This document shows positions 24,129 to 58,970 of a stretch of DNA of 64,000 nt, one piece after another. A program made the translations under genes and the position numbers. Each line of letters opens with the position of its first letter. Position 1 is the stretch's first letter. The notes beneath the pieces are model-generated. The model did no database searches. It was not told the DNA's origin and saw only the letters and a list, made by a program, of their open reading frames with translations. The DNA is from Perkinsela sp. CCAP 1560/9 (lineage: Eukaryota; Protista; Euglenozoa: Kinetoplastea), in the NCBI GenBank assembly GCA_965644495.1, contig CBFFSA010000001.1:1488001-1552000 (forward strand), given 5' to 3'.

Positions 24129-24344
24129 TGTGCGTTTTTTAGAAGTCTACGCATGGAAATTTAACCGAGGGGCTAATATCGGGTCAAATGCCCCGGAAGG
24201 TGGTTATAATTTTCATTGTTCTTTTCCCCGAAAGGGGGTTGTAATTGAATCATGTATAAAAGCTACAATATGTATTCTGAAAATTTACATATTTGCTGAT
24301 TACTTACTTGTAGAATCTTTTTCCTTTACGCGTTTTTTTGTACC

Positions 24345-25649
24345 ATGCGTTCCCAGCGACTTCGCGTGCCGGCGAACCCAGGACATGAGCGAGACCGCAG
24401 CCCTAAGCGAACACGTCCTCTCTCCCCTTTGGACCCCGACAAACGCCGTTCCTTGTCTTGTCCAGCTGGGCGACCACCTCGTCCTGATCCAGCTTCGCCA
24501 GTAGACTCTTTCGCGGTTCCTTCGCTGCGCTATTCTGGCCGAAACCGACGCACAGTACACCCTTCTCCTTACCCCAGCCCTTACCCTGACCCCCTAACGG
24601 CCCCCCAGAACTCGGGAGATATTCCCCCACGGCGGCAGAGCACGCTCAACCCTGACCAAGTTGAGCCTTCCCGCTCCCCTCAGCGTTATGAAGACCTTAA
24701 TCTCGACCATGTAGACCGTGCTATTCGATCCAACCAAAATGCGCGTGGAATATTGACTCAGACTGCTAAGGAAGAATTTGTAACCAAGATAATTAATCTT
24801 CTTCGCAAAGAATACCAGGTCACTGTCGAGGCAGTGTGGTCTCGACCAGGTGATGACATTCGACAGACAGTCATAGGCGACGTTTACATGAAGCACCCAA
24901 ATGACCCAGTGTCCTTAGAATTGGTCGTTGAGTGGGATGGTGATGTCAATACGGCATACCGCTTTCCCCATCCCGACATTACGTATCACGATTTGACGGT
25001 CGTCCGTGTTCGGGCAAAGATGCCTGGAGGGCAGCCGGTGGAATCTTTAATCCCGTCCTTTGAACGAGTACGTATTACAGACCCCAAAAGCTTCTCCCCC
25101 TACGACCCGGTTACGTGGCAACCGTGGATCGACACGGAGGATTTGTTCAAGCCCCGAGACCTCATCCGTGAGCTGCGGGAGGCGCCGCAGCTAGGGGTTC
25201 GATTCAACCCGCCACCGCAGCGGGACCGTTTATTCAAGATCCTTATCGAATGGATCTACGCTGCTCGCCTGACGGAGGGTTGGATGGAGAAACATAACCT
25301 TGCTGTGGCAGAACTCATAATCGAGGAACTCCGTAATCTCTACTGGGCCGCTGCGGGTGTTGCTGTCGAACGCGTGCAACAGCGACTGCATCGTGATGAT
25401 GATCCGAAAGATCGTTATGGGCAACTCGTTCTCGACGAACAACTCCGAGGTCGTCCCCAAGTTCGATCCTCCCGTCGTCGGCCTTTCTGCTTCTCGTGTC
25501 ACCAGCCGGGCCACATTCGTGCGGACTGCCCGCAGATGGCTCAGGCCCAGCACCAGTTTCGTCCCTCCCATCCGACGAATCAGGATTTTCGCGGAGGGGT
25601 GGCGGGCGGCGCCGTCCGTTACGCCGGCGCAACACGGGGTTCCCACTAG
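24345..25649 (+). CDS. Gag of YR element B
   Basis: CCHC zinc knuckle CFSCHQPGHIRADC. Confidence 0.9.
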   Translation: MRSQRLRVPANPGHERDRSPKRTRPLSPLDPDKRRSLSCPAGRPPRPDPASPVDSFAVPSLRYSGRNRRTVHPSPYPSPYPDPLTAPQNSGDIPPRRQSTLNPDQVEPSRSPQRYEDLNLDHVDRAIRSNQNARGILTQTAKEEFVTKIINLLRKEYQVTVEAVWSRPGDDIRQTVIGDVYMKHPNDPVSLELVVEWDGDVNTAYRFPHPDITYHDLTVVRVRAKMPGGQPVESLIPSFERVRITDPKSFSPYDPVTWQPWIDTEDLFKPRDLIRELREAPQLGVRFNPPPQRDRLFKILIEWIYAARLTEGWMEKHNLAVAELIIEELRNLYWAAAGVAVERVQQRLHRDDDPKDRYGQLVLDEQLRGRPQVRSSRRRPFCFSCHQPGHIRADCPQMAQAQHQFRPSHPTNQDFRGGVAGGAVRYAGATRGSH

Positions 25650-28408
25650 GGAATGCCCCCCACCCCTATTACTCGTGCCCCTTGCCTCAGGCAGCAAAGG
25701 GCTCCTACCGCTCCAACCTTACAAACGCGCTTACCCCGACGAGACTCTCCGGTGAGGCGTCCTCGACCCCCTCTTTCTTCCAATCCTCCCCTTCCTCATG
25801 TTGTTTCCACTCGTCCTCCGCGAAGTCGGTCCCTTCCCATACGCGCACTAAACCAGTCCGCAGGAGAAAAACCCGCCGCAGACCGCAACGCCATTCTCCA
25901 AGCCATCCTTCGCCTTCCTCCGAACGACCCACGCACACTACAACTGAGCGACGCTCTCGAACCGATGTGGGCCACGACCACATGGGCCAACAGGGAGCGA
26001 ATTTGGCTACGTATGCAGCAGTACTGCGCGGCAAAGGGTGTTCCTTCAAATTCCACAAACGCGGTTCTCTTCCTCCATTCGCTGCCTCTAGCCAGCTCGA
26101 CGAGAATGGGTTACGCAGGAGGCTTGCGAACTTTATTTCAGTTAATGGGGGAAGAGTCGTCTCCCTTAAAACTATGTATAAAGGCCCTGCAAGCACAGGG
26201 GGGGCTAGAGCCCACGCGCCAAATGCAGCCCGTCAACCCCATTCTTCTACAAAAGCTACGCCGACACTTGAATCCGAAGGAGAGCATGTGTTGCCTCCTA
26301 TGCTGGAAGGCAGCGGCGCGTTGGACCGAGACCGCGGATTTAAGAAGAGAACAGTTCGTGAGTGTAACAAGCTGCGAAGTGATAATTTATTGGGGGAGGG
26401 GGACAAAGACCACACGCCTAAACCCTTTTCGACCACACCTTTACGCCATTGTAACTGGGCCAGGAACGCCAGAACTCGCGCAGCATATCCAAAGCATGAA
26501 CCCCGGGCAACGACTCTGTTACACGACAGTCCGCGAGATGGACCATCAAATACGATCAATACTCGGTCAGGGGTACGGGACGCACTCTATCAAAAGGGGG
26601 GCAATCACTCATCTGTTTCACGAAATCTCTCTCGGAAATTTGCGCATGCAGGAGGTTCAAAACCTAACAAAACACCAGAACATAGAATCACTGCTCAGAT
26701 ACAATGCAAACAGCGTTACAACGGCACGGGCCCTCGGGACACAACGAGTGTCTGCACTCCTTCCGGTACTTTAACAACCTCTCATGTTACAAAGTGTTTT
26801 CACGAAGTCCCCTATCTCCGTAGGCACTCCGTTATATGTGCCCGCCGTAGCTCGCGGCTCGCTATACCGAAGGATATGAGTCTACCCCTCCATGTGAAAA
26901 AGTCAATCCCGGTGATTAAATTGGACAAGGTGAAGGAATGGTTAAATCCTGCGGCAGCCACACGTTTTCGCAAGGTACTAAATGAACTTTTATGGGTTCC
27001 TACAGGCCCGTACCCCGAGCCTTCGGTACGTGGTTCTTTGCCCGAGGAAGACATACGTCTACTTGAGGACGCCGGCGTTATAAGCAAGGTTTCGGGGAAG
27101 GACCTACTCAAAAGACCATCCATGCAATATATGATCCCCTTTACAGTGGTTGAAACCGACGATGAAGGTAATCAACGCCGCAGGTTTATATCCTGGACAC
27201 GAGATGACAACAACAGGCTTTTAAATTATGAACCGGAAGTTGCGCTGTATCACCCATCCAAATATCTACACAAAGCACATGATGCAATGGCAGTGAAGCG
27301 CGACTTCACTTGTGGTTTTTACCAAATTAGTATTCCCTTGAAGGCACGGCCCAAGTTTAGATTTCGATCGACATTGGGCGAAGTTTTCGAGATGAACGTT
27401 CTTCCCATGGGTCATCGCTGCGCACCAGAAATCATGCACACTGTTACCGCCGCAATTGCCGGCGAGAGGTCGGTGTGTCAGGAGCGTTTCTCGTTTCACA
27501 GAGGTGCCACTGACGTTTACGTCGACGGAGTTCGTTTTTCGGGGACAGCGAACGATGCCCTCGAATACGCTCGCTTTATTGACGAGCGGTGTTCCAAAGC
27601 AAACGGCCTCTTTAAAGACGCCGGACAGCCCCCTGCTTTGAAGTATGTTTTCAATGGGGTGGCTTTCGACCACGACACTCATACGGTCTGCCTGGGACCG
27701 AGAGTGGTCAGTAAACTGCAAAAAGACAAATTTCATAAATTGTCTTTTGGTGATCTTGAGGCGGCGGTGGGGCGTCTTCTGTATGGATCTGCAGTCTTGC
27801 GGCTCAATATGCCACGCTTTTATTTCGCGATGAAAGTCGCGCAGCGTAGGATCAACTTATTAAATCGCTGTCCGTATTTGATCGACAAGCCAGTTGATCT
27901 TCCGGTAGTTACTCGTTCTACACTTACCGAATGGCGAAATGAATTGATATGCAATCTTCCCCGACCCCCGCCTCCTCATCCTGACACCGTTCCTCACCAC
28001 CACAAGTTATACACGGATGCTTCTGCGAAGGGATGGGGGGCCATCATTTACCTTGATTCTGGGGAGGTATTAATTACTGGTGAGGCATGGCCGAAAAATT
28101 TTAAGTATGAAGTGAATCGGGCCGAAGCGATGGCGGTCCGCTTAGCTATTAAAAAGTTTGCTATGCACTCCCCCAAAGGAACGTGCTTGGATATCTTCGT
28201 GGATAACACCTCCTGTAAGGCAGCGTTGAACAGGAGATTATCGAAGTCAGAAGGAGTGTCAAAGGAATTGAAAGAAATAATACGAGACACTGAGAAACGT
28301 GGGATTTGTGTCGAGGCGAGATATGTGTCTACGTTGAACAATCCGGCCGATCATATAAGTCGGGGTAAAGAAGTTGACATTAAACAGATTGAAAAGTGTG
28401 TGATGTAA
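25496..28408 (+). CDS. RT-RNase H of YR element B; its -1 frame overlaps the gag end and all of YR
   Basis: PFTVVE..RRRFISW, KRDFTCGFYQI, LPMGHRCAP, YVDG; RNase H YTDAS..AEAMA..FVDN..NPADHISR. Confidence 0.9.
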   Translation: MSPAGPHSCGLPADGSGPAPVSSLPSDESGFSRRGGGRRRPLRRRNTGFPLGNAPHPYYSCPLPQAAKGSYRSNLTNALTPTRLSGEASSTPSFFQSSPSSCCFHSSSAKSVPSHTRTKPVRRRKTRRRPQRHSPSHPSPSSERPTHTTTERRSRTDVGHDHMGQQGANLATYAAVLRGKGCSFKFHKRGSLPPFAASSQLDENGLRRRLANFISVNGGRVVSLKTMYKGPASTGGARAHAPNAARQPHSSTKATPTLESEGEHVLPPMLEGSGALDRDRGFKKRTVRECNKLRSDNLLGEGDKDHTPKPFSTTPLRHCNWARNARTRAAYPKHEPRATTLLHDSPRDGPSNTINTRSGVRDALYQKGGNHSSVSRNLSRKFAHAGGSKPNKTPEHRITAQIQCKQRYNGTGPRDTTSVCTPSGTLTTSHVTKCFHEVPYLRRHSVICARRSSRLAIPKDMSLPLHVKKSIPVIKLDKVKEWLNPAAATRFRKVLNELLWVPTGPYPEPSVRGSLPEEDIRLLEDAGVISKVSGKDLLKRPSMQYMIPFTVVETDDEGNQRRRFISWTRDDNNRLLNYEPEVALYHPSKYLHKAHDAMAVKRDFTCGFYQISIPLKARPKFRFRSTLGEVFEMNVLPMGHRCAPEIMHTVTAAIAGERSVCQERFSFHRGATDVYVDGVRFSGTANDALEYARFIDERCSKANGLFKDAGQPPALKYVFNGVAFDHDTHTVCLGPRVVSKLQKDKFHKLSFGDLEAAVGRLLYGSAVLRLNMPRFYFAMKVAQRRINLLNRCPYLIDKPVDLPVVTRSTLTEWRNELICNLPRPPPPHPDTVPHHHKLYTDASAKGWGAIIYLDSGEVLITGEAWPKNFKYEVNRAEAMAVRLAIKKFAMHSPKGTCLDIFVDNTSCKAALNRRLSKSEGVSKELKEIIRDTEKRGICVEARYVSTLNNPADHISRGKEVDIKQIEKCVM
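25653..26774 (+). CDS. Tyrosine recombinase of YR element B
   Basis: WKAAARWTE (R), GTKT (K), HSIKRG, LTKH, LRYN. Confidence 0.92.
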   Translation: MPPTPITRAPCLRQQRAPTAPTLQTRLPRRDSPVRRPRPPLSSNPPLPHVVSTRPPRSRSLPIRALNQSAGEKPAADRNAILQAILRLPPNDPRTLQLSDALEPMWATTTWANRERIWLRMQQYCAAKGVPSNSTNAVLFLHSLPLASSTRMGYAGGLRTLFQLMGEESSPLKLCIKALQAQGGLEPTRQMQPVNPILLQKLRRHLNPKESMCCLLCWKAAARWTETADLRREQFVSVTSCEVIIYWGRGTKTTRLNPFRPHLYAIVTGPGTPELAQHIQSMNPGQRLCYTTVREMDHQIRSILGQGYGTHSIKRGAITHLFHEISLGNLRMQEVQNLTKHQNIESLLRYNANSVTTARALGTQRVSALLPVL

Positions 28409-28526
28409 AGGGCACGATAATAGACCGGTCATCTATTATTGTGTTATCCTTCCCTAGTTATTTTCGAAAAAAAAAAAAAAAATTACTGTGTGTTCGGGAA
28501 AATATTGTGACGTGTGTGTGGGCAGG

Positions 28527-29664
28527 TAGCCGCCGGGTTTGGCGGGTGCAACCTGCTAACATAGTGATATATTATAAATTTATATTGTTTGTTTTGAAAG
28601 GCCTATTTTGTCAAGATGATGTAGAAGCTACATACGTTTCAATTTGCTTTTCATGTATATGATATGAATAGGTGAACTCATGTGAAAATAAATTATTATT
28701 TCATCTTTATAGTTATTTTCTTTTATGTCCTGTGCGGCCCCTCGGTGTGGATTTCTAGAAGTCTACGCATGGAAATTTAACCGAGGGGCTAATATCGGGT
28801 CAAATGCCCCGGAAGGTGGTTATAATTTTCATTGTTCTTTTCCCCGAAAGGGGGTTGTAATTGAATCATGTATAAAAGCTACAATATGTATTCTGAAAAT
28901 TTACATATTTACTGATTACTTACTTGTAGAATCTTTTTCCTTTACGCGTTTTTTGTCCCACCCACCAAACCCCCATCCTATAGCCGCCGGGTTTGGCGGG
29001 TGCAACCTGCTAACATAGTGATATATTATAAATTTATATTGTTTGTTTTGAAAGGCCTATTTTGTCAAGATGATGTAGAAGCTACATACGTTTCAATTTG
29101 CTTTTCATGTATATGATATGAATAGGTGAACTCATGTGAAAATAAATTATTATTTCATCTTTATAGTTATTTTCTTTTATGTCCTGTGCGGCCCCTCGGT
29201 GTGGATTTCTAGAAGTCTACGCATGGAAATTTAACCGAGGGGCTAATATCGGGTCAAATGCCCCGGAAGGTGGTTATAATTTTCATTGTTCTTTTCCCCG
29301 AAAGGGGGTTGTAATTGAATCATGTATAAAAGCTACAATATGTATTCTGAAAATTTACATATTTACTGATTACTTACTTGTAGAATCTTTTTCCTTTACG
29401 CGTTTTTTGTCCCACCCACCAAACCCCCATCCTATAGCCGCCGGGTTTGGCGGGTGCAACCTGCTAACATAGTGATATATTATAAATTTATATTGTTTGT
29501 TTTGAAAGGCCTATTTTGTCAAGATGATGTAGAAGCTACATACGTTTCAATTTGCTTTTCATGTATATGATATGAATAGGTGAACTCATGTGAAAATAAA
29601 TTATTATTTCATCTTTATAGTTATTTTCTTTTATGTCCTGTGCGGCCCCTCGGTGTGGATTTCT
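28527..29664 (+). repeat. 2.5 tandem copies of the 454-bp B+A terminal unit of element B
   Basis: Identical blocks at an offset of 454 bp. Confidence 0.97.
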
Positions 29665-30654
29665 GCTTTGAAAATACGGCTAGGATTACAATGAGTTACA
29701 CATAATTATCCATCGTTTACTTCCATACATGTATGAATACGGTGCATTAAAACGATTTCACATTTTTACATGTATTACTCAAAGAGTTCCTGCAATACTA
29801 AATATTATAAATAAATGTTATAAATAAAATAATACGGGCATTTTCTAAAATTTTCATCATAGGCTGAAAAAGGACTACATGTTTTCGTACTTCCCACTTG
29901 GGGATTAGCATCCCACACGGGTAACAATGCAACCATGAAAGAGAAGCTGATGCAGAAGCTTGAGAAACATAACGAAATTTTTAGACGCCTCAAGATAATG
30001 GGTCCGAACAATATTTCACTCCGACTTCTCTCCAAATCAGTGAACGTCCGACACTCTTACTTCATGCGCGTGCACGCCCCGGACAATACTCAAGATTCGG
30101 CACTTCAGTTCGATAAAGAGGTAGGAGATGTATTGAAACATTGGTTGGGACCATTGGACCAAGAGCAAATGGAGCTAGCACGACTCCCCGTTAGCGAAGG
30201 CGGGTTGGATCTTACTGCATGTAATTCGATACGACGCGCAGCTTACGCAGCATCACGACAAACGATTTTCGAGCGCCATAATTCTTTTTCAGCTCAGATT
30301 GTCAATCGAAATGCTGTGCGTGCGTCAGAAGAAATACGAAACAGCACAGACACCAATGAAGCGAGCGAACGATCCCAGAAGCTATCCCACATAGCAAGGT
30401 CCACAACCTTCAAAGGAAATTACGACTGGCTGCAGTCAACTGCAAAGTTGGTACCGTCACATCTTTTTAGGCTAGCGGTATTACCGAGATTAGGAATGCC
30501 CCTCCAATCGTCAATGAAAGAAATTCGATGCCCCGGATGCCAAACTGAACTCAACCAACATTCGGTTCTGACCCATCTACCAGGATGCACTCAATGCAAG
30601 GGAATAAATGCCTCATTCAAACATAACACCCTGGTTCGCTACATACACAAGATG

Positions 30655-33088
30655 GGGTAGGGGGGACCTTCGATGAGTACTCATCGAAAGTCTACAACTT
30701 TCCGTGAGTCTCATCGAAAGTCTACAACTTTCGATGAGTACTCATCGAAGCGTTTTTGAGCGACTCTAATAGCGATTTTCGAGCTTTTTTTATTACTCAC
30801 CGAAGCGTTTGCGGCAAACAAACTGAAGCATTTGTGGAAAACAAATTCGCAATCCTGCGGAAGGGGTAGACACAGGTTCTCAGCTGCTGGAGCGCACGGG
30901 TCGCCAAAAAATATTATTATGTCCCAGGGCTACGCTCACAGTTGGGCCTTGCTTGCAAACAGGGGCTTTTGCCTCCAGAAGTGGGCTACGCTCACAGTTG
31001 GGCCTTGCCTCTGGACAATCCTGCGGAAGGGGTAGGTAGACGGGTTGGGGGTACGTTCGTTTAGTTCTCAACGAACGGAAATTTACGGTGGAAGTCACGG
31101 ACTTTTGCATAAGTCAAGGACTTTTGTGGAACACCCAAGAATTTTTTTTGATTTTCTTTTTCCGTGCGTTCAGTATCCTACACTTCGCTACATACGTTGA
31201 CAACGCCTGCGTAGCGAAAACTACGAAATTCAGTGAGCTTCGCAAATTGCTTCCCACTAACGACACACAGGGGAATCCTACGCGGGGTACGGCTCAGGCC
31301 CGCTCACGCGGGCCCTCGCCGTTTCGCGGCCGCGCGCACCCCCGCTCACGCGGGGGCCCCCGCGCGGCCAAAATGGGTACTAAAATTTGTTATCAAGGTA
31401 GTTGGGTTTCGCCAATTGCTTCCCACGAATGGGTACTAAAATTTGTTATCAAGGTAGTTGGGCTTCGCAAATTGCTTCCCACGAATCTAGAGAGAAGCAC
31501 ACGTACAATAATCTTTCACGATAAGTTAAACGAAGTTTAAGTTAAGTTAACGAAGTTAACGAACAGTTGGGCCTTGCTCGCAAACGGGGGCTTTTGCCAC
31601 CAGTAGTGAGCTTCGCTCACAGTCGGGCCTTGCTTGCAGGCGTGGGCTTCGCTCACAGTTGGGCCTTTCTTCCTCCGGGTAGGGGGGACCTTCGATGAAG
31701 CTTCATCGAAAGTGTACAACTTTCGATGAAGCACATTGAAAGTTGTACACTTTCGATGAATCTTCATCGAAGGTGTTTTTGACTTTTTTTTTATTTTTTC
31801 AAATCTTCACGCAAACGTTTTTCGCGGATCCATATAGATATTTTGACTTTTTTGGTGCTTCATCGAAGTGTTTCGTGAAGGCTCGTAGAAGAATTTCACC
31901 GTTTCTTCAGTTTATCTTCATCGAAGCGTTTTTGACTGATCCATATACATATTTTGAGCGACAATCCTGCGGAAGGGGTAAACACAGGATTTTCGTTGAG
32001 TACTCAACGAAGTGCCGGATTTTCGTTGAGTACTCAACGAACGGAAATTCACGGTGGAAATCAAGGACTTTTGTGGAACATCCAAGAATTTTTTTTTGAT
32101 TTTCATTTTCCGTGCGTTCAGTATCCTACACTTCGCTATATACGTTGACAACGCCTGCGTAGCGAAAACTACGAAATTCAGTGAGCTTCGCAAATTGCTT
32201 CCCACTAACGACGCACAGGGGAACCCTACGCGGGGTACGGCTCAGGCCCGCTCACGCGGGCCCTCGCCGTTTCGCGGCCGCGCGCACCCCCGCTCACGCG
32301 GGGGCCCCCGCGCGGCCAAAATGGGTACTAAAATTTGTTATCAAGGTAGTTGGGCTTCGCAAATTGCTTCCCACGAATGGGTACTAAAATTTGTTATCAA
32401 GGTAGTTGGTCAAGATTATCAAGATTATCAAGTAGTTATCAGTTGGGCCTTTCTTCCTCCTCCCTCTAAGGTCCTGCAGATTTTTTACGGTCACAGGGTA
32501 CGTTCGTTGAGAAATCAACGAACGTACCCCCAAGCCAAAATGTGAAAGAAAACGGAAAGTCAGAATTCAGACAAAAAAACAAAAAATTATTGAATTTAAA
32601 ATGAAATTATATGTTTCATGCAACGTGTTTTCAACAGCCAATGGAAAAATTTGTTCAAAAACAAAAAGTTAAAAAAGTCAAAAAAAGTCGAAAACACCTT
32701 CGATGAAGATTCATCGAAGGTCCCCCCTAGCCCTTCCTCCTCCCTCTAAGGACCTGCAGATTTTTTACGGTCACAGGGTACGTTCGTTGAGTACTCAACG
32801 AAAATCCGGATTTTCGTTGAGAAATCAACGAACGTACCCCCAAGCAGGGGTAGACACAGGTTCTCAGTGCGCGACCCGCACGCTGGAGCGCACGGGTCGC
32901 CAAAAAATATTATTATGTCCCAGGGCTACGCTCACAGTTGGCCCTTCGCAAAAAATTGATAAAATACGAAAAATTGAAAAAGTCAAAAACACCTTCGATG
33001 AGTACTCATCGAAAGTCTACAACTTTCCGTGAGACTCATCGAAAGTCTACAACTTACGATGAGTACTCATCGAAGGTCCCCCCTAGCC
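30655..33088. mobile_element. Non-autonomous TIR DNA transposon, 9-bp TSD
   Basis: Termini gggtaggggggaccttcgatgagtactcatcg...cgatgagtactcatcgaaggtcccccctagcc; TSD cacaagatg at 30646-30654 and 33089-33097. Confidence 0.95.
31677..32732. mobile_element. Nested related TIR element, 8-bp TSD
   Basis: Same GGGTAGGGGGG...CCCCCCTAGCC termini; TSD cttcctcc at 31669-31676 and 32733-32740; the uninterrupted target sequence is visible at ~32445-32470. Confidence 0.93.
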
Positions 33089-34039
33089 CACAAGATGTGT
33101 CTAAATGCAGGAATTCCTTGCGAGAAAGAGCCTCGAAGATTCAGCTCAGTTCACTGCACTACATGCCGGGCACCCATCACCGAAGAAACAAGCTACAACC
33201 ACTCGAAAGTGTGTGCTGGTAGACAGACTCATCGCAATGGGCCTGATTTGGTTATCCATTGGCAAAGCGGAGAAATCTACTACGATCTGACCGTCATTCA
33301 TGAGCTAGCGCCGTCGCGAATTCAACAAAAATGTGGACGCCTCATTAATGAAGCCATTAAACGGAAGCAAGCAACGTACGTCGCATCCGGATTGATTCCC
33401 GCATTATCTTTTCAGTGTCTTCCAGTACTTTCAGGAGGATCCTTGCATAAGAATTTGAAGAATCTACTGGATACTCTAGCAGATGCGTCGGTAGTAAGCA
33501 GGTATCACGTGGCGCTCGAATTTAAACTCATACTCCAAGAAATGAACGGCCTAATTGTATACGATCAGATGCGCAAATATATGCCATGGGACAGCACGGA
33601 ACGAAGATTGAGCATGTAGGAAATAAAGGATCACGTTAATGGCCAGGGGCGCTTCTAGTGTAAATCAGTAGTTTAGGCTGTTGGTTTAGAGTAGAAGCGT
33701 TGGGGCTTAGCGCACCTCGCCACCCGAGCTGCAAACTTCCATTGAAGCGATAAAATTACAAAACAAAATATGTAAAGTCCATATTTCATCATCATAAATA
33801 TATAAAGTCCATATTTCATCATCATAAAGAGAAAAAGAAAAAGAAAAAGAAAATCTTAATGGATAGTTCTTGGATAGTTGGGTTGCTGTTCGTCTGCTGT
33901 AGGTGTAGATTTCTCTTCGTAAATTGAGAGAAGGGGGGAAGGTGAACATTTCTCACATACAAGTGACTTCCTGCTGTAGAGAGCTCATAGGATTTCACGG
34001 GAGAAATAACTCCAAGACTCAAAAACAAAAAAAATTAAG

Positions 34040-34710
34040 CTTGTGAGTTTTATTAAGCTTGTAAAAAAAAATCTTGGACGACTGAGGCAAATAAAGATTT
34101 CCTGAGGGACCTGTCGCCCCGGGGGCGGGCTTGTACGAGAGATTGATGCTCAGCGTTTTCCTTCTCACCTTCCGTGAGACAACTTCGCCGATCGAATCGT
34201 AAACCAAGTTCTGGGAGCTGCGGAAAGACCATCGTACGCTGCATTCGGTGCCTTTTCCCCAGTTCGAGATTTGGTCGACGACGTAGTCTGGGGATATGGG
34301 GGAATTTTCTTCCGTGACGGTTTTCGCACCAGCGCTATCATAATCAGCGTCGGCCTCCGTGTCCAACTCGGGGCAGTGGCGCGACAATGTTTCTTTGGCA
34401 GAGGGTTTCTGTTCATCGCACCGCTTTTTTGACATGGATTTATGAGCTTGTGATTCTTTCTTCGAGTGGGTGTTCGGGCCGTTTGTGAGTTGGCAGGGGT
34501 TATGAACAAAGGATCTTCGTTCGTTTTTCAGTGCGTAGCTCGCTTTATCTTGGGAAAGCGAGATCTTGGCAGGTTCATGACGTTGGGCCTCACGGCTCTG
34601 GGAGACTTTCCGTGGCGGATCGCGCTTATCGCTTTCGGAGCCGGATGATTCGCCTTCCTGTTTCCCTTGAATCAAACGGCGCCAGGTTGGACGTCGATGC
34701 TTCTTTTTGC
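34040..34710 (-). pseudogene. Subfamily I CRE N-terminal fragment
   Basis: WGKGTECSVRWSFR...GNLYLPQSSKI matches the 1161-aa ORF. Confidence 0.8.
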
Positions 34711-34717
34711 GTCTACC

Positions 34718-35821
34718 AAAGTTGTACACTTTCGATGAAGCACATCGAAAGTTGTACACTTTCGATGAATCTTCATCGAAGGTGTTTTTGACTTTTTTTG
34801 ACTTTTTTAACTTTTTGTTTTTGAACGAATTTTTCCATTGGCTGTTGAAAACACGTTGCATGAAACATATAATTTCATTTTAATTTCAATAATTTTTTGT
34901 TTTTTTGTCTGAATTCTGACTTTCCGTTTTCTTTCACATTTTGGCTTGGGGGTACGTTCGTTGATTTCTCAACGAACGTACCCTGTGACCGTAAAAAATC
35001 TGCAGGACCTTAGAGGGAGGAGGAAGAAAGGCCCAACTGATAACTACTTGATAATCTTGATAATCTTGACCAACTACCTTGATAACAAATTTTAGTACCC
35101 ATTCGTGGGAAGCAATTTGCGAAGCCCAACTACCTTGATAACAAATTTTAGTACCCATTTTGGCCGCGCGGGGGCCCCCGCGTGAGCGGGGGTGCGCGCG
35201 GCCGCGAAACGGCGAGGGCCCGCGTGAGCGGGCCTGAGCCGTACCCCGCGTAGGGTTCCCCTGTGCGTCGTTAGTGGGAAGCAATTTGCGAAGCTCACTG
35301 AATTTCGTAGTTTTCGCTACGCAGGCGTTGTCAACGTATATAGCGAAGTGTAGGATACTGAACGCACGGAAAATGAAAATCAAAAAAAAATTCTTGGATG
35401 TTCCACAAAAGTCCTTGACTTATGCAAAAGTCCTTGATTTCCACCGTGAATTTCCGTTCGTTGAGTACTCAACGAAAATCCGGCACTTCGTTGAGTACTC
35501 AACGAAAATGCTGTGTTTACCCCTTCCGCAGGATTGTCGCTCAAAATATGTATATGGATCAGTCAAAAACGCTTCGATGAAGATAAACTGAAGAAACGGT
35601 GAAATTCCTCTACGAGCCTTCACAAAACACTTCGATGATGCACCAAAAAAGTCAAAATGTCTATATGGATCCGCGAAAACCGTTTGCGTGAAGATTTAAA
35701 AAAATAAAAAAAATGTCAAAAACACCTTCGATGAAGATTCATCGAAAGTGTACAACTTTCAATGTGCTTCATCGAAAGTTGTACACTTTCGATGAAGCTT
35801 CATCGAAGGTCCCCCCTACCC
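34718..35821 (-). mobile_element. Inverted copy of the 31677-32732 TIR element with one terminus lost
   Basis: Reverse-complement near-identity; intact terminus cccccctaccc at 35811-35821. Confidence 0.9.
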
Positions 35822-37091
35822 ACGGATCTATGCCTACATTGACGATATCAGCATTGCGTCAACCGAGCCGGAACTTATCGCAAAAGCTTACTTCCGCCTA
35901 AGGGAACTGCTGCTCGAGAAACGAGTGGATATGGCCCCTCAAAAGTGTGTCTGGTTCGAAGGAACACAAAAAATCCCTCTTCCGAATCCATTACAAGGAG
36001 CTGGCGTGGCAACTGAAGCACAAGCGATAAAGGTTCTGGGGGCTTTTGTTGGAGAACCAGACATCGTAAGTGAGAAGCTTCTGCAAAAGCTCGAAAAGCA
36101 CCAAACTATCTTCCGTCGTCTACGTCGGACACCCGTTCGAGAAAGGGAGGGAAGGGAGTTCTCTCCAGGAAAAAGTTCATGAGGTATATAAAATAGATTT
36201 GATACTTCGCGAAGTTGATATTACAGTACTGGTGAAGATAATGTCTTTTACTCTGTTGTCCATGATGGATGTTATATTTCGGTAGCTCTGTAGTTCTACA
36301 GATTAAACATTACAGTTTACATACGCTTACTATATCTGATTGACTATATGTTTTTCTTCCGGAAGTGCAATTCATCATTGCACCTTACGCGACAATTCGA
36401 CTCCAGGGTATCAGATACGCTACAGACGTGGTTTGGAGAACTCACAGCAGAACAACTTTCTTGGGCACGCCTTCCCCTCAAAAAAGGCGGGCTTGGACTT
36501 ACTCCCTCAGAACCTCTTCGAGAGGCAGCCTACACTCGTTCGAAACTTGCAGCAACGGAGCGACCATCTCACCTTTCAGCTCCCGCCGCTCGTTTAGGCG
36601 TAGTGCAGAGCCAACCTCAACTCAGCCAGCACGCCCCTACGGAGGAAGAAGAAGTCACCGAGGAACTCTACCACAACGACATACGGGACAAATTAATGAC
36701 AGACAAAACGCAAGCCCACATAATACGAGCAGCTAGCTCCAAAGGTAACTATTCATGGCTCACCTCAAATTCTAGACTTGTACCTACGCGACTTTTCAAG
36801 TTAGCAGTTATGCCATGCATTGGGATTGCACATCCGAGCCTCCCCTCCAATTTACAGTGTCCAGGGTGCCATGCATTACTTACCCCCCGTACAGCGCTCA
36901 CGCACGTGTCCGGGTGCGTCAAATGTTCAGGCAATAACGCAACGGCAAAGCACAACAGGATGGTTCGGAATATTTATGAATTATGCATAAAATCAGGTCT
37001 GCCCTGTGAGCTGGAACCCAGACAGTTCTCCACCTATACTTGCGCAAAATGTGGAGCAAGCGTGGATGGCGACGGCAAATCCCATCACCAA
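35822..37091 (+). pseudogene. Subfamily II CRE RT-to-knuckle fragment, interrupted at ~36128-36360 and continued at 41257
   Basis: RIYAYIDD..KCVWFEG..KVLGAFVG; LPLKKGGLGL; CPGC; GKSHHQ|RTCGSGSFYHSGPD. Confidence 0.85.
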
Positions 37092-40000: not shown

Positions 40001-41248
40001 CAGTCAAGAGTCGCCTTCCAGTATCATTTCCCACGTCGCAGGATGCTCCCGGTGCTCAGGAATGAACTGTACGCGCAAGCACTCCCACATCGTCCGTTAT
40101 CTCGCCGATTTGTGTTCCAAAGCTGGATTGCCTTCGGTCATTGAGCCACGCATATATTCCTCCTATTTCTGCACGAAATGTAAATGCACCATCTCAGCCG
40201 AGGTTTCCGAGCAACATCCGTGCAAAGCCCGCCGCATTCGTTCTGGCCCCGACCTTGCCATCATGTGGCCCCACATGGGGGAAGTCCTGTACGATTTCAC
40301 CGTTGTTCACACTTGCTGCGCCAGCTATGCCAAACAAACTAGCACAGCACTGATGCAGCAAGTTATTGATAAGAAGTTCAAGAAATACGTCGTAGAAAAA
40401 GGCGTCGATAGCGATTCTTTTCGTTGCCTGGCCACAACTGATTGTGGCCTACTACATAACGACACGAAAGTGCTGTTGAAGGCGTTGGCGAACCGAGCCC
40501 AGTTAAAATACGAAAACGTACGGCAAGCCCTTCAGCTCGAAATCGAAAAGATGACGGCATACACGGTTGTTTCGCAACTTCGTCATTACATCCCGAAGGA
40601 GAACTGGATCGGAGGACTTCGATCTTAGGTCAAAAATGTTCCTCAAATGCGAACAAAGCTTTCTGTCTTTCTCCCTTCCCTTCTCTCTCTTTTCTTTACT
40701 CTTTCTCTTGCCTAGAGAAAGACCTCAGCGAGCTCTCCCCCCTTTCCTCCTCCTACGAATCCTAATCCTAATATTAGATTTCATTGAGAGTTACGAATGT
40801 TGCTAGTTTCCTTGATGATCGTACCGTTGTTTAGGTTTCTCATTAATACTACTACTCTTCCCCCTCTTCCGCCTATGCAGAATCGTGAGAACTTGTATGT
40901 ATTGTTTCTGGTAGAAATATTGTTCTGTTTGTTGATTTTGTGTTGTGTGAAGGCTATTCGTAAACACTGAAAGTCTATGAAAAGAAACTGAGATGAATGT
41001 TCACAGACAGTGACACTAAACAAAAGGATTAAATCCCCAAATGCATATATACGAATTATTGTCCCCGAAATATAATATGATTTTTCTGAAAACCGAAAAA
41101 AAAAGAGCAATGCAGGTGTTCGTCAAGGCTCTAAAAGTTTACGATAAGAATTGATCAAAGGAGATGGGACCTCATTATTCAGGATGCCCCCTACCGGGGG
41201 TTTTCCCCCCGAAACAAATCTCCCCCCGAATTAAAAAAAAAAAAAAAA
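37092..41248 (+). mobile_element. Full-length subfamily I CRE-like retrotransposon: SL remnant, ORF, 3'UTR, polyA and an 8-bp TSD
   Basis: TSD atcaccaa at 37084-37091 and 41249-41256; ctgtaccttgttg at 37093-37105; polyA at 41233-41248. Confidence 0.93.
37143..40628 (+). CDS. Intact 1161-aa RT-RLE polyprotein (subfamily I)
   Basis: VDFSNAYN, GIRQGSALS, AYQDD, LGGLGL, three Cys/His clusters, GPD..YDFTV..KKFKKY. Confidence 0.95.
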   Translation: MARLARGTSQTSKGFGVKSCRLTVKLRKQEQNNNENNEVKSMASASEKPKKTPRIRIIGSTPLSKNWVDHGMTLDEQNKTPSQADNKNIIKITSQRFNLDRAIKSTIDCKTSAQHPAADNIPNGNEMENDDSDYDHDVAGVDDTMSLDSESEVERLMGTNSNNFKAADHVHKVVAHWGKGTECVMEWGFRQSSTTYKSKGTVVGRSARQGQVKIKISYEPAPGNDGPKGFLYLPQSSKIKICSLRATKLVKVEVQAKNFEEEASKISSEDGQSDLEPLPHMARIDPSFSVHVVAIFRAIIRGYSNAKLDSEKEAIWHKFLNAPRDSLASVRTLARRTTTVGHVRKMEHLDADNSLTPEEREELQIDKRSIRNALNTARAGNTGKAVRILDNIYRDSPLTAEEKVRKLKELHPEGPAIDIPIADFPRIAVVEQSEFRLAVERLAKGASPGPSGSSESMVRLLADDDEACLSLCHMIRDVINGEIPFSVRKRLTRCRIIALPKPQNGIRPVAMGDTILKICGSILLQRHESNLKGFFAPIQRGVLHKNACESIIHELLREYDEGHALLTVDFSNAYNTPHRDAIAKSLTENPIFKPFMRLFFLEYGLPSELLFFAHNSLFATIDSTSGIRQGSALSSMYFCALLQGPLREVAGLYPDVNIRAYQDDVTLSSKNVKSLEAAFLHLREITGEINLQVKFEKCEWFQKDTPCTGESSLEGLGVNFRTDTLKILGAYIGGDEIVEDLLIKKMSKHQCLFRRLLLMGPSNLSLAILRRCMIPRQDYHLRVHRPHATRRLAEAFEKQVHKVVEKWCGADETAFQLAALPQKLGGLGLISSVLKQKFFFESSQTSIDEHFQPTYAPVDLTGGNKTSAKAQSRGEIAQKLLKKKMTTEHEKQLAELKKNGRIEHILKRTKEANLHLESTSNYINPYLFRYTLMMRLGIGLSKAPAKITCPGCCSQESPSSIISHVAGCSRCSGMNCTRKHSHIVRYLADLCSKAGLPSVIEPRIYSSYFCTKCKCTISAEVSEQHPCKARRIRSGPDLAIMWPHMGEVLYDFTVVHTCCASYAKQTSTALMQQVIDKKFKKYVVEKGVDSDSFRCLATTDCGLLHNDTKVLLKALANRAQLKYENVRQALQLEIEKMTAYTVVSQLRHYIPKENWIGGLRS

Positions 41249-52247: not shown

Positions 52248-52513
52248 TAATAGTTTACGAGATGAAATTTAGGCGAGGGCTATTTACGTTTAATAACCTG
52301 GCCCTTCGGGGCACATAAATATATGAACTTATGATATGGCCCTTCGGGGCACATGTATTATTAGTTTCTTCTTTCTCATATTCTTCAGTTTATGACTTTC
52401 AAACATCAACATATTTAGTAGACTTTATTTCCTTTTTGTAGCTGTACACGAGTTTCGAGGCCCACCCACCAACCCCCAGCCTCGGCTGCGGGGTGTGGGG
52501 GGCTGAGCCCCTT
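52248..52513 (+). repeat. Solo A-repeat plus the start of B from YR family C
   Basis: Reverse complement of ~58092-58357; begins exactly at taatagtttacg. Confidence 0.9.
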
Positions 52514-54378
52514 TCTTTCTGCGCATTGGAATTGTTGAACGAGACGAACTCCTCTTAGCGGCCAGCAAATTGGCAACGGGTGCTTCCCCCGGACCTACAG
52601 ATTTCAGCGAATCGATGTTGCGACTTCTCGCCGACGATGAAGAATGCAGCATTTGCTTATGCCACATGTTCCGCGACGTGATCAATGGCGACATTCCAAA
52701 CTCAGTGCGTGATCGACTCACAAGATGCAGATTAGAAGCTTTGCCCAAACAAATAAATAAACTGCGCCCGATCGCTATAGGAGAGACCATCCTTAAAGTG
52801 TGTGGCATCATTCTTTTGCAACGACATGAAGACGCGCTTAAAAAGCACTTTCAAACCTTCCAACGAGGCATACTATAAAAGAATGCGTGTGAGCAAATTG
52901 TGCATGAACTGATAGAAGAATACGAGGCAGACCACAAGATCGTCACAGTGGATTACACTAACGCATTCAACACACCAAACAGAATCGCCATTGCAGAAAC
53001 TCTTCAAAAGCATGATGTTTTCAGACCATTTATGCGCCTCTTTTTCCTAGAGTACTCCGAGCCATCTGATCTTCTTTTCTTTGCTGACAACACACTCTAT
53101 TCAACAATCAAAAGCACATCTGGGGTACGACAAGGTTCAGCGCTCTCATCTCTCTACTTTTGTAGCTTAATACATCCCATCCTAGCTGAAGTAGCCGATC
53201 TTTTTCCTGAAGTCACGATCCGAGCATATATGGACGACATCACGCTTTCATCTCGAAACACTTTATCCCTAGAAGCCGCTTTCCTCCATCTTCAAGAACT
53301 TTCTAAAGACTTATCACTTGATGTCAACTGCAATAAAACAGAGTGGTTTCAGAAAGGAGCAAAAAACTGTCCATTGGCATTGCAGAAAGCTGGTCTATCG
53401 TCACCGGAGAAATCTGTCAAGATCCTAGGCGCCTACATAGGGGAGAATGAGGACGTTAGTGAAAAGCTCGTACGACAGTCAGTAAAGCATGTATGCCTTT
53501 TTTGACGTTTGCAAATCATGGGCCCAAGCAATCTTTCGTTAGCAATGTTGCAACGATGCACGATTCCACGACAGGATTACTTTTTGCGCGTCCACAAACC
53601 AGCAGCTACACTGAAAATTGCGGAATGCTTCGATGCTGAAATATCAAGAATTATCTCACACTGGTTTCTCGCCACAGGTGACTCACTCCGCCTCGCAACT
53701 CTACCGCAAAAAATGGGAGGTCTTGGTCTCACTCAGTCCACCTTAAAGCAACGGTACTTTTTTGAAGCAGCCAGACGATCTATTGATGAGCATAAAATAT
53801 CCACTAAAGCTCCGGTAGGTCAACAAGCTGTTGAGAAAGTTAGTGGCGTTACTTTGAATCCGATGAAAAGAAAAACTAAGGCCTCTAAAGCAATTCGCGA
53901 AGAGCAAACAAAAGTGCTGTCAGAAATCAAAGCAAACAAGCGATTAAGTGAAGTCATTAGCAGAACAAAGGACTCGAATTCACACTTGGTCTCCACTAAT
54001 GATTACATCGGGTAGGGGGGACCTTCGATGAGTACTCATCGAAAGTCTACAACTTTCCGTGAGTCTCATCGAGAGTCTACAACTTTCGATGAGTACTCAT
54101 CGAAGCGTTTTTGAGCGACCCTAATAGAGATTTTCGAGGTTTTTTTATTACTCACCGAAGCGTTTGTGGCAAACAAACTGAAGCGTTTGTATAAAACAAA
54201 TTCACAATCCTTCGGAAGGGGTAGACACAGGTTCCCAGTGCGCTACCCGCGTGCTGGAGCGCGCGGGGCGCCAAAAGATATTATTATGTCCCATGGTCAA
54301 AAGAGAATCCGAACTCCTAATCGATAATAGAAGCTAAGTCAGACTGCATAATTTACAAAAAGAAAACATATGATCTAC

Positions 54379-55529: not shown

Positions 55530-57299
55530 ATTATTTACTTTTTTTTACCTTTCATGGGAGTGTTCACACGCTCCCAAGCAAAAGAATCAGGAGTAGTCCT
55601 GAGATTTTGCCGCTCCCTCCTGCCCGCCGGAAAAAGAAGGCCGTGATGCCAACTCCTCCTCCGCCCGCCGTGCCAATATCCACCACCTCCGCATGGAGCG
55701 CACGGGTCGCCAAAAAATATTATTATGTCCCAGGGCTACGCTCACAGTTGGCCCTTCGCAAAAAATTGATAAAATACGAAAAATTGAAAAAGTCAAAAAC
55801 ACCTTCGATGAGTACTCATCGAAAGTCTACAACTTTCCGTGAGACTCATCGAAAGTCTACAACTTACGATGAGTACTCATCGAAGGTCCCCCCTAGCCGA
55901 TTACATCAATCCCTATCTTTTCCGATATTCCATAATGATGCGATTGGGGATATCACTCCCGAAAGCCTCAGGGATTTGCCATTGTCCGGGATGCGGGTCA
56001 CAGCAAGAAGGAAACGGCCTTCTTCATCATGTTGCGGGCTGCGCACAATGTTCAGGTATGAACACCACGAAGAAACACACACACCTGATCCGTTTGCTTT
56101 CAGATTTATGCACCAAGGCTGGGCTCCCTCACGTGGTCGAACCTCGAGTACATGCTTCATTCAATTGCACAAAGTGCAAGGCAAGTATTTCTGCAGATGC
56201 AGCTGAACGACATGCGTGTAGAGCGCGTCGGATACGTTCTGGTCCTGACTTGGGAATAATGTGGCCTCACCAGGGAGAGATATTGTATGACGTAACTGTT
56301 GTACATACTTGTACGGTGTCAAATGCAAAGTTCACCCCTGAACAACTAATGGAAAACGCACTGGCCAGGAAAAATAAAAAGTATGTAGAACAGAATGGTT
56401 TGGAACCAGAGGCGTTCAAATGCTTAGCGGTGACTGATTGTGGGCTTCTCCATGAAGACACTAAAAGACTCATCTCTGTTTTAGCAGCACGGGCACACCT
56501 CAATCCTAAAGACACACGCGATGCCTTCCGACTAGCAGTTGAAAAATTCAATGCATACACAGTTGTATGCCAACTAAGAGACGTGATCCCACACTGCAAC
56601 TGGATAGGCGGACTAAGTAACTAATCTTTCCTTAAACGGTTTTATTAACACAACTAATCTTTCCCAGTAAACGCAAACTGAGCACTTTACTTTACTTTAT
56701 GGTTATTTTCCTGAAGGACAAATATCACAATGACAAAAATGTAAACTTGTGTTAGTAATTATACTCGGAAAGTCAGGTAATCGTTCAGACGAAATATATG
56801 ATTTTATTTTATTGAACATTAGAAACAATTTCCATAAGTTAAAACTTTTTGCAAAAGTTAATAAAGCTTTTACTTTACTTTGCAACTCGAAAATTTTGGA
56901 TCACCACCCTTCCCTTTACATAATTAGAAAAAAAAATTAGCAAAATCAAAATTTTCGAATAATCGCCCCTTTGCACAAATGATAGCGAATATATCTAAAT
57001 ATAGTTACCTTCGTCAAAAAAAAAAAGATATTTTATTTATAAAAGGATTTTCTGCACAGAAGGATTGTTATTCCAGGTTGAAAAGTGATATTCAAAAAGT
57101 GTATCTTACAAAAAACGATGGTAAAAAAAAAAAAAACATGTAACTGACCAATTGAGTGAGCGAGAAAAGTATAGGACCGAGTGTTGCCGCTCCTGTTTCC
57201 CGTTTGGCCCACTGTTTCTTCTGGAGGATCGATTAACATTTCTTCTGGAGGTTCGATCGCCAAGGTGGGTATTGCTCGATGATTTGACGTTTCCGCTTC

Positions 57300-57889
57300 G
57301 GGGTGTTCGTGGGGAACTCTCGCGTCGCGTCCCAGCATGCGTGTTGTTTCGAGCCCCGCCACTGCATGCGGATCTAGAAACGACCCTAGGTAGGCCCGCA
57401 GGGACGATTCCGATACATGACGAGTGAGATGTTGAATTTCCCTGGCACTTATCCCCGATGCAGCGAGGTGCTGAAGGGAGCCTCGTCTTATCGAATACAA
57501 CGTATGGTGTTCCTTGAGCAATGGGTGGTAATTGTCGACCGGAATTTGCCGTATCTGTTGGTCGATGCGACGAAGATCTATCGGGAATAAATTTTCGGAT
57601 GCATTTTGCCGGCTGTTCCAAACATGATTCTCGATCAATTTCCTCCAAAATCCCGGTACGAACATTCTCACACACCGAGGAGATAGCCTTTCTTGAGTAT
57701 TCGTGTTTTTGCAGTGCTGATACATCCATAGGTTGACTTGCAATTCGTTGTTTATCGTACTCATGGCCACATCTTTCACTTTCTGACGCATTAAATCTCC
57801 CGGGCGTTGACCCGAGAGCCAATAGATTGCTAGAAAGGATTTTCTCTTCGGTGAATAGCGCCGAACTTCCAATGAGGTTTTTTATATGG
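57300..57889 (-). pseudogene. Tyrosine recombinase catalytic-domain fragment
   Basis: SGQRPGD (R), CKN (K), YSIRRG, LTRH, RAYL; cut off at its 5' side by element C. Confidence 0.85.
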
Positions 57890-58970
57890 GAAATCCACGG
57901 CGAGGGCTCACAGCAGCATCAAGTAAAGTTAAAATGATATAAAAATAGATATACTCATCAAGAAATAAGACTCTGAAAATAGTTCGCATTACTCAGCCCT
58001 GAAATATGAGTTCACCTAAATCTTTCCAAAATGAATGAAAAAAGGCCTTGCGCGCTATAACGTAAATATTAAATACTAGTAGTACGAAGTGAAGGGGCTC
58101 AGCCACCCACACCCCGCAGCCGAGGCTGGGGGTTGGTGGGTGGGCCTCGAAACTCGTGTACAGCTACAAAAAGGAAATAAAGTCTACTAAATATGTTGAT
58201 GTTTGAAAGTCATAAACTGAAGAATATGAGAAAGAAGAAACTAATAATACATGTGCCCCGAAGGGCCATATCATAAGTTCATATATTTATGTGCCCCGAA
58301 GGGCCAGGTTATTAAACGTAAATAGCCCTCGCCTAAATTTCATCTCGTAAACTATTAGAAATCCACGGCGAGGGCTCACAGCAGCATCAAGTAAAGTTAA
58401 AATGATATAAAAATAGATATACTCATCAAGAAATAAGACTCTGAAAATAGTTCGCATTACTCAGCCCTGAAATATGAGTTCACCTAAATATTTCCAAAAT
58501 GAATGAAAAAAGGCCTTGCGCGCTATAACGTAAATATTAAATACTAGTAGTACGAAGTGAAGGGGCTCAGCCCCCCACACCCCGCAGCCTCCGAACCCGC
58601 TCACACGTATCATACCCGGTCGCTCGTATCAAAGATCAAACAAACGTGTCCTGCGAAAGTACAAAATGGGGATGACCAGTCCCACACCTTATAATTTCGA
58701 GCACATCACGAACAACCGAAGGAGCACAAGTTACACTTTAATGGAGCTAAAAAAACTCCTCGAAACTCGTGTACAGCTACAAAAAGGAAATAAAGTCTAC
58801 TAAATATGTTGATGTTTGAAAGTCATAAACTGAAGAATATGAGAAAGAAGAAACTAATAATACATGTGCCCCGAAGGGCCATATCATAAGTTCATATATT
58901 TATGTGCCCCGAAGGGCCAGGTTATTAAACGTAAATAGCCCTCGCCTAAATTTCATCTCGTAAACTATTA
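57890..58970 (-). mobile_element. Non-autonomous YR element C (A1-short core-B1-A2-B2, ~1.08 kb)
   Basis: A1 58970-58777, B1 ~58590-58358, A2 from 58357, B2 to 57890; starts taatag and ends gtggatttc, paralleling element B. Confidence 0.85.

Follow-up and report, generated by a model that had tools for sequence, protein, structure and literature searches.

A conserved imperfect palindrome at the internal B/A junction and crossover point of VIPER-like tyrosine-recombinase retrotransposons in Perkinsela

Canonical tyrosine recombinases (YRs) cut the two strands of their sites 6-8 bp apart, which gives two classes of ends if donor and target are without a common core. The integron site attC is read by IntI as a folded bottom strand, and the attP(+) site of the CTX phage is a forked single-stranded DNA hairpin recombined by XerCD. 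For the YR retrotransposons Ngaro, PAT and VIPER, a circle-junction model combines the order A1-ORFs-B1A2B2, termini that correspond to the internal B/A junction, insertion without target duplication and solo AB units. The elements described here agree with this model in these respects, and a copy from Diplonema does so further in having CTA in common with its (TAC)n target. They depart from the circle-junction descriptions in that the junction carries a palindrome, a box pair and a hairpin, and in that targets share at most one base with it.

The 'trinucleotide at the junction' idea of Goodwin and Poulter is taken here as summarised in PMC7192593 and PMC6681497. In DIRS-1, an internal complementary region (ICR) holds an internal copy of the joined ends and is needed to rebuild the junction, and the element makes single-stranded cDNA intermediates, which are of the antisense strand (PMC7192593). 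According to the same 2020 paper, no experiment had yet addressed the specificity of the DIRS-1 recombinase (PMC7192593). The junction described here is likewise an internal copy of joined ends; the copy is direct and itself palindromic, whereas the ICR is complementary to inverted terminal repeats. The literature we searched offered no defined recombination site for any YR retrotransposon, and its open part described neither a junction palindrome nor a folded substrate for them; the primary Goodwin and Poulter papers were outside that scope, so priority may exist.

The junction palindrome and the elements that carry it

The window, that is the whole 64-kb stretch of Perkinsela sp. CCAP 1560/9 DNA analysed here, contains a YR retrotransposon that we call element B. 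Its order is A1, gag, YR, RT/RNase H, B1 A2 B2 A3 B3, with tandem units of 454 bp, which is the split-direct-repeat plan A1-ORFs-B1A2B2 of Ngaro, PAT and VIPER plus one extra AB unit. The element and its coding parts are as follows.

24140..29663, + strand: element B, VIPER-like split-direct-repeat YR retrotransposon (repeats, ends, empty-site contigs)
24345..25649, + strand: gag-like ORF of element B with a CCHC zinc knuckle (PF00098 match)
25653..26774, + strand: tyrosine recombinase ORF of element B (motifs RWTE, GTHSIKRGAIT and LLRY, recognised by eye; relatives)
26996..28408, + strand: RT/RNase H part of a long ORF, YVDG motif (homologs); C-terminal half of the ORF ending at 28408

The YR ORF of element B gave no match in Pfam and none in a PDB sequence search, and its RT/RNase H region gave weak, sub-threshold Pfam matches to RVT_1 and RT_RNaseH. 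For the window's other elements, YR ORFs matched Phage_integrase below the Pfam cut-off and RVT_1 matches were above threshold. The homolog search returned proteins from the same or closely related assemblies as the closest RT relatives; more distant ones were Angomonas TcC31.12, which is VIPER-type, and a Diplonema papillatum protein. These RT relatives and the order gag-YR-RT/RNase H identify the elements as VIPER-like. The remainder of the window is also retroelement-dense.

The palindrome is the internal B/A junction of these split-direct-repeat elements. The following full sites and half-sites were located in the window.

28737..28789, + strand: full junction palindrome B1/A2 of element B, crossover 28755/28756 (covariance model, 68.4 bits)
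29191..29243, + strand: second full junction palindrome, B2/A3, of element B, crossover 29209/29210 (covariance model)
58324..58376, - strand: full junction palindrome of the element C array, crossover 58358/58357 (covariance model, 79.3 bits)
24140..24173, + strand: 5' half-site of element B, loop and right arm, from TA (partial covariance-model match, 21.4 bits)
29645..29663, + strand: 3' half-site of element B, left arm to ATTTC (end read)
58937..58970, - strand: 5' half-site of the element C array (covariance model, 29.3 bits)
57890..57908, - strand: 3' half-site of the element C array, left arm to ATTTC (end read)
52248..52281, + strand: 5' half-site of another family C copy (repeats, end read, covariance model)
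41132..41165, + strand: 5' half-site of a third family, GAATTG type as in L082 (covariance model)

A full site is a 53-base imperfect palindrome in which a single bulged G separates an outer stem of 10 bp from an inner stem of 8 bp; the inner stem contains two G.T pairs, and the loop has 16 nt. In element B the letters are gcccctcggt-G-tggatttc, the 16-nt loop and gaaattta-accgaggggc; element C has the identical architecture with other outer arms. The three full hairpins are exactly those of the original prediction, which had assigned them to the junctions of two YR families. The junction location was correct; the number of families was too low, since the site occurs in about 20 of them.

Folding as DNA gave -12.7 kcal/mol for element B and -13.2 kcal/mol for element C (z about -5.5), and none of 200 shuffles was as good. 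The complementary strands gave -11.8 and -12.6 kcal/mol, less than 1 kcal/mol from the sense strands. When folded as RNA, the sense strand reached -28.8 kcal/mol and the antisense strand -21.3 kcal/mol. A clear sense-strand preference exists only as RNA, the two DNA strands being about equal.

The core pattern matched three times in the window, with 0 matches expected. Over the 21-Mb genome, the strict core pattern had 90 matches and the relaxed core ATTTCTAnnAGTnnACGnnnnGAAAT (up to 2 mismatches) had 251, with 0 for the reversed control; the covariance model recognised at least 121 copies among 150 scored candidates. The genome holds at least 121-251 copies of the site, in about 20 families.

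Further features were noted around these sites. The element C array (58970-57890, minus strand) consists of A1 B1 A2 B2 with no internal coding region and adjoins the YR ORF of another element (57033-57872, minus strand); its length of 1081 nt is about 145 nt beyond two 468-nt units. At locus L081, repeats were found at 238-nt spacing, from which no junction was assigned. A small hairpin is conserved in many otherwise different families: GGCCC-TTCG-GGGC, situated some 45-60 nt into A, with ACAT and then another hairpin, rich in AT, after it (window 28800-28860 and, on the minus strand, 58260-58310; L004, L005, L006, L032, L039 and L082). After these hairpins, the A region of element B has a TATA-like box near +128. 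The start of the B repeat carries a C-rich motif, (T/G)GCCCACCCACC(G/A)AGCCCCCAGCC, common to divergent families (window 28956-28985; L004, L005, L006, L031, L034 and L041). A T-rich or pyrimidine-rich tract stands upstream of every junction, at B ends, and AG at loop positions +5/+6 is kept in every relative except Diplonema. We speculate that tract and AG would resemble a splice-acceptor region in a trans-splicing organism.

The window also contains arrays of near-perfect lox-like palindromes, at 30652-30777, 31674-31799, 32977-33102, 34709-34808, 35710-35835, 54007-54132 and 55787-55912. Their centre of 4-5 nt, CTAC or GTAC, is flanked by arms about 12 bp long (..TCATCGAAAGT / ACTTTCGATGA..), and they have the letters AAGTCTAC in common with the loop of element B. 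These arrays may be recombination sites of another YR family.

Element ends, crossover point and mode of insertion

In the window, 5' ends begin with the T of TA (24140, 52248 and 58970) and 3' ends finish on the C of ATTTC (29663 and 57890). All five ends had been placed at the ATTTC/TA boundary beforehand and all five are found there, with the correction that 29664, given as an end of element B, is the first flanking base and the 3' end is 29663. The loci fetched from the genome gave 42 5' ends at /TA and 55 3' ends at ATTTC/ (the slash marking the crossover), that is at the same phosphodiester. The lone exception among about 100 ends was one 5' end that was one base short. No end at the right edge of the loop, and no second end class, was seen among the approximately 100 ends of the fetched loci. 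The proposal that the palindrome lies at the YR recombination point is borne out by these ends, which apart from that one 5' end all fall at the stem/loop boundary.

Genome-wide, one family group comprised 43 intact junctions, 59 3' ends and 7 ambiguous 3' ends with a TA flank. A two-cut model with an overlap of at least 2 bp was rejected, as TA follows 7 of 66 3' ends, which is about chance, and there is no longer end class. In the same family group, precise 3' ends (59-66) outnumbered precise 5' ends (37, C-preceded ones excluded). This excess may have arisen because elements were truncated at the 5' side, because sites rearranged with each other afterwards, or because the assembly has gaps.

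In contigs from three public runs, 24139 is continuous with 29664 and exactly the 5524 nt of element B are absent, with an ambiguity of 1 nt. The joint, which comes from an allele or from a flanking-repeat paralog, is that of a conservative insertion, with no target duplication and no loss, which is what a YR should produce. The 18-nt satellite arrays, which are frequent targets, confirm clean insertion by their periodicity. Several different 18-nt satellites, for example one with the unit TTATTAAGATAACAATTT, were hit repeatedly, with insertion after a T run (L020, L021, L022, L039, L076 and the empty-site contigs).

Target sequences were analysed at 76 loci and at the genome pattern matches. 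They displayed a weak preference for T/G at -3, T at -2, T/G at -1, A/T at +1 and A-rich sequence from +2 to +4. No core common to junction and targets was found in this genome, at most one base being common to both. GAA begins at +7 or +8 in 12 of 51 target flanks, compared with about one per position elsewhere; this signal right of the cut is suggestive only, some of the flanks coming from related repeats.

One insertion had an unusual flank. The solo AB unit at L050 (G000:C1:2411945) is about 416 bp long and has 15 A residues directly behind its ATTTC; it may be a rare retroposed unit-length RNA or a chance occurrence. Poly(A)-defined 3' ends as a general feature were rejected, as this was the one convincing case genome-wide, about 1 in 100 ends.

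Conservation and covariation across families

The alignment contained 19 distinct representatives, namely 17 families of this genome, the L082 family and an environmental contig (L079). The invariant or nearly invariant columns are ..TTC/T...A.T..AC.....GAA.., and the loop is exactly 16 nt in 19 of 19. Over the whole stem, 82.7% of cells were paired, compared with 67% after shuffling (0 of 500 shuffles reached the observed value) and 32-54% in slid registers, and changes on both sides were seen in 13 of 18 pairs. For the outer stem alone, the paired fraction was 72.6%, compared with 48% after shuffling and 40-48% at slides of +/-1, and all ten pairs (10/10) displayed both-side changes. Outer-stem pairing thus peaks in the bulged register, which identifies the register with a one-base bulge as the conserved one. 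RNAalifold independently gave the same bulged register.

The inner stem and bulge were more variable than initially proposed. The wobble column 16/45 has G.T in 12 of the 19 representatives, G-C in 2 and other combinations in 5, and column 17/44 has G.T in 12, A-T in 5 and C-G in 1; T.T occurs in 3 cases at the wobble positions. Among the 17 families of this genome, the bulged base is G in 15 and C in 2. A comparable bulged stem is absent from L082, from the environmental contig and from Diplonema. The original description of a fixed bulged G, fixed wobbles and a fixed loop length therefore applies to B, C and about six related families, and in all 19 representatives as regards the loop; the wobbles vary and distant relatives are without the bulge. 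Its claim that outer stems differ and stay paired is supported by the covariation of 10/10 pairs and by the bulge register, but does not extend to L031, L032, L035, L079 or Diplonema, in which outer pairing is poor or absent. The outer stem is poor in L031, L032 and L035, and pairing is weak in 4-5 families overall and in the distant relatives. A strand bias within the outer stem was looked for and rejected: with the two conserved inner columns set aside, 4 cells are G.T and 7 are A.C.

The distant relatives keep a reduced version of the site. The L082 family has a perfect CAATTC/GAATTG inner stem without a bulge, together with a long stem of other sequence (z -5.5). The environmental contig, from a different ENA sample and with an RT 34% identical, has split repeats and the junction GATTC/TCACAGTTTAC..GAAT; both of its ends fall at the junction point, and its fold is no better than shuffles (z -0.4). 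In the Diplonema papillatum copy (L080), CAATTC/CTATGGTTTACTGTGG GAATTG stands at B1/A2 with no outer stem (z +0.2), and A1 begins at the same junction point, within a (TAC)n tract. Boxes, 16-nt spacing and left-edge crossover are also found in a family of this genome whose RT is 49% identical. VIPER-like loci of Trypanosoma theileri were degenerate copies without clear split repeats. What is deeply conserved, then, is a pair of inverted boxes, ATT(T)C on the left and GAA(A)T on the right, at a distance of 16 nt, together with some of the spacer and the left-edge crossover; the long covarying stem and the bulge are elaborations present in most families of this genome.

A second dyad is formed around the cut by the left arm and the 5' half of the loop, CGTGGATT..AGTnnACG, with 78.9% of cells paired compared with about 40% in slid registers. 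This pairing comes mostly from conserved letters. The second dyad was rejected as a DNA hairpin: its stability as DNA did not exceed that of shuffles, and it reached significance only when folded as RNA, in family B alone. Reading the sequences by eye, it is not kept in L082 or Diplonema.

Possible modes of recognition of the site

The palindrome is very probably the att-like crossover site of the split-direct-repeat YR retrotransposons. The internal B1/A2 would be a stored copy of the junction formed by end-to-end closure of the reverse-transcribed element. The recombinase would recognise the inverted boxes ATT(T)C and GAA(A)T, placed exactly 16 nt apart around the half-conserved spacer TAnnAGTnnACG, cut the sense strand directly 3' of the left box and join it into weakly specified, T-rich targets without duplication. 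Only the sense strand would be exchanged, and replication or repair would finish the process. A one-strand exchange of this kind is indicated by the single end class, by the lack of a target core and by the lack of a donor box 6-8 bp from the cut. The exchanged strand would be the sense strand because the conserved left box is 5' of the cut, as YR chemistry requires. Pairing would keep the family-specific outer arms complementary; it could occur within single-stranded cDNA, giving a hairpin, or within the circle, giving a cruciform. The paired arms would place the cut at the boundary between duplex and single strand. The argument for pairing is that a single protein reading both arms on duplex DNA would hardly account for arm complementarity that involves a 1-nt asymmetry.

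Taken as a whole, with att site, one-strand exchange and arm pairing in DNA, this explanation is possible but falls short of probable. The pairing itself, as a hairpin or cruciform within the att-site role, is proposed slightly more tentatively still. A strong outer stem is not universal, being poor or missing in L031, L032, L035, L079 and Diplonema, which counts against pairing. The second dyad resembles a duplex core site and would count against it as well, and the fixed length and partly conserved letters of the loop suggest protein geometry on duplex DNA. The antisense polarity of the DIRS-1 cDNA would be a further objection, since in canonical YR reactions the arm that is bound lies 5' of the cut, which would call for the sense strand.

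A plain duplex site appears doubtful as the explanation. The recombinase would then bind the inverted boxes and the family's outer arms on a double-stranded circle, and the hairpin would be a by-product. Arms that change together are expected if one dimeric protein binds both and co-evolves with the family, and different lox-like sites keep perfect inverted arms of differing sequence. Diplonema still has the box sequences, the distance of 16 nt between them and half of the letters in the spacer, the stems of distant relatives are weak, the second dyad spans the cut, and the target GAA 7-8 nt right of the cut (12/51) hints at a dimer on a duplex target. However, because of the bulge the outer arms are offset from the boxes by 1 bp, and it is this offset register that is conserved. 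Moreover, no box is found in the donor at 6-8 bp from the cut, there is a single end class and no core is common with the targets. The site is like loxP, FRT and dif in its inverted arms and in the position of the cut, 3' of the bound arm on the cleaved strand. It differs from them in that the boxes are 16 nt apart instead of 6-8 (the second dyad leaves 2-6 nt), in the 1-nt asymmetry of the arms, and in having one crossover position in about 100 ends with no common target core.

An RNA hairpin is distinctly less probable. Here the hairpin would act in a genomic transcript with an intact B1/A2 junction, in packaging, recognition by reverse transcriptase or RNA processing, and the recombinase would read the embedded boxes only. 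The large difference between sense and antisense as RNA, compared with a gap of 0.9 kcal/mol as DNA, points in this direction, as do the non-Watson-Crick cells, mainly G.U and purine-purine on the sense strand, and the tetraloop hairpins close downstream in A. Such a role would leave the DNA crossover exactly at the stem/loop edge without a reason; the G.U signal comes from just two conserved columns, and some families have T.T at those two columns. It is highly improbable that RNA cutting in the loop, by a ribozyme or a host nuclease, sets the ends instead of a recombinase: the 15 A exactly after ATTTC in one solo AB unit would fit, but such a poly(A)-like flank occurs once in about 100 ends, and split direct repeats with clean site-specific insertion fit recombination. 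A known ribozyme or RNA family was also looked for and rejected, with no Rfam match for the window at gathering thresholds or for element B at E values up to 5.

To return to pairing in DNA, the original prediction was of a strand-specific folded substrate. The single crossover class, the lack of a target core and the 16-nt spacing of the boxes fit this idea, while the DNA strands lying within 1 kcal/mol of each other, the fixed loop and the non-universal stem do not. A folded, attC-like reading seems plausible, if tentative, and sequence alone cannot decide between folded and duplex substrates. Like attC, the site is an imperfect inverted repeat; it has an unpaired base that is conserved in most families of this genome, a variable yet paired stem and a single crossover compatible with one-strand exchange. 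Unlike attC, in which loops vary widely and the cut lies in a box at the stem base, it has a loop fixed at 16 nt with partly conserved letters and a cut at the stem/loop edge. It also differs from attC in that distant relatives lack the bulge and in that the host is eukaryotic, the element a retroelement and a single-stranded substrate hypothetical. As in CTX attP(+), the folded strand would mimic a duplex site, one strand pair would be exchanged and replication would finish. In CTX, however, the stem itself holds both binding arms, opposite each other with a short centre between them, whereas here one box-sized duplex adjoins the cut. A more far-reaching form of the proposal is that VIPER-type YR retrotransposons integrate from a folded single strand, with a junction hairpin in the cDNA, one-strand exchange at the stem/loop edge and completion by replication; in this form it is rather unlikely.

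Altogether, the finding offers a defined 53-nt site with a core of about 26 nt, a mapped crossover, natural variants and many matched recombinase genes. A short defined site with variants and matched recombinases makes the choice between a folded and a duplex substrate directly testable in vitro. If the folded reading is true, tyrosine recombinases would carry out single-strand recombination in eukaryotic retroelements as well as in bacteria, and integron attC and CTX-phage recombination would have their first counterpart in a eukaryote. Such recombination would also connect with the single-stranded cDNA of DIRS-1.
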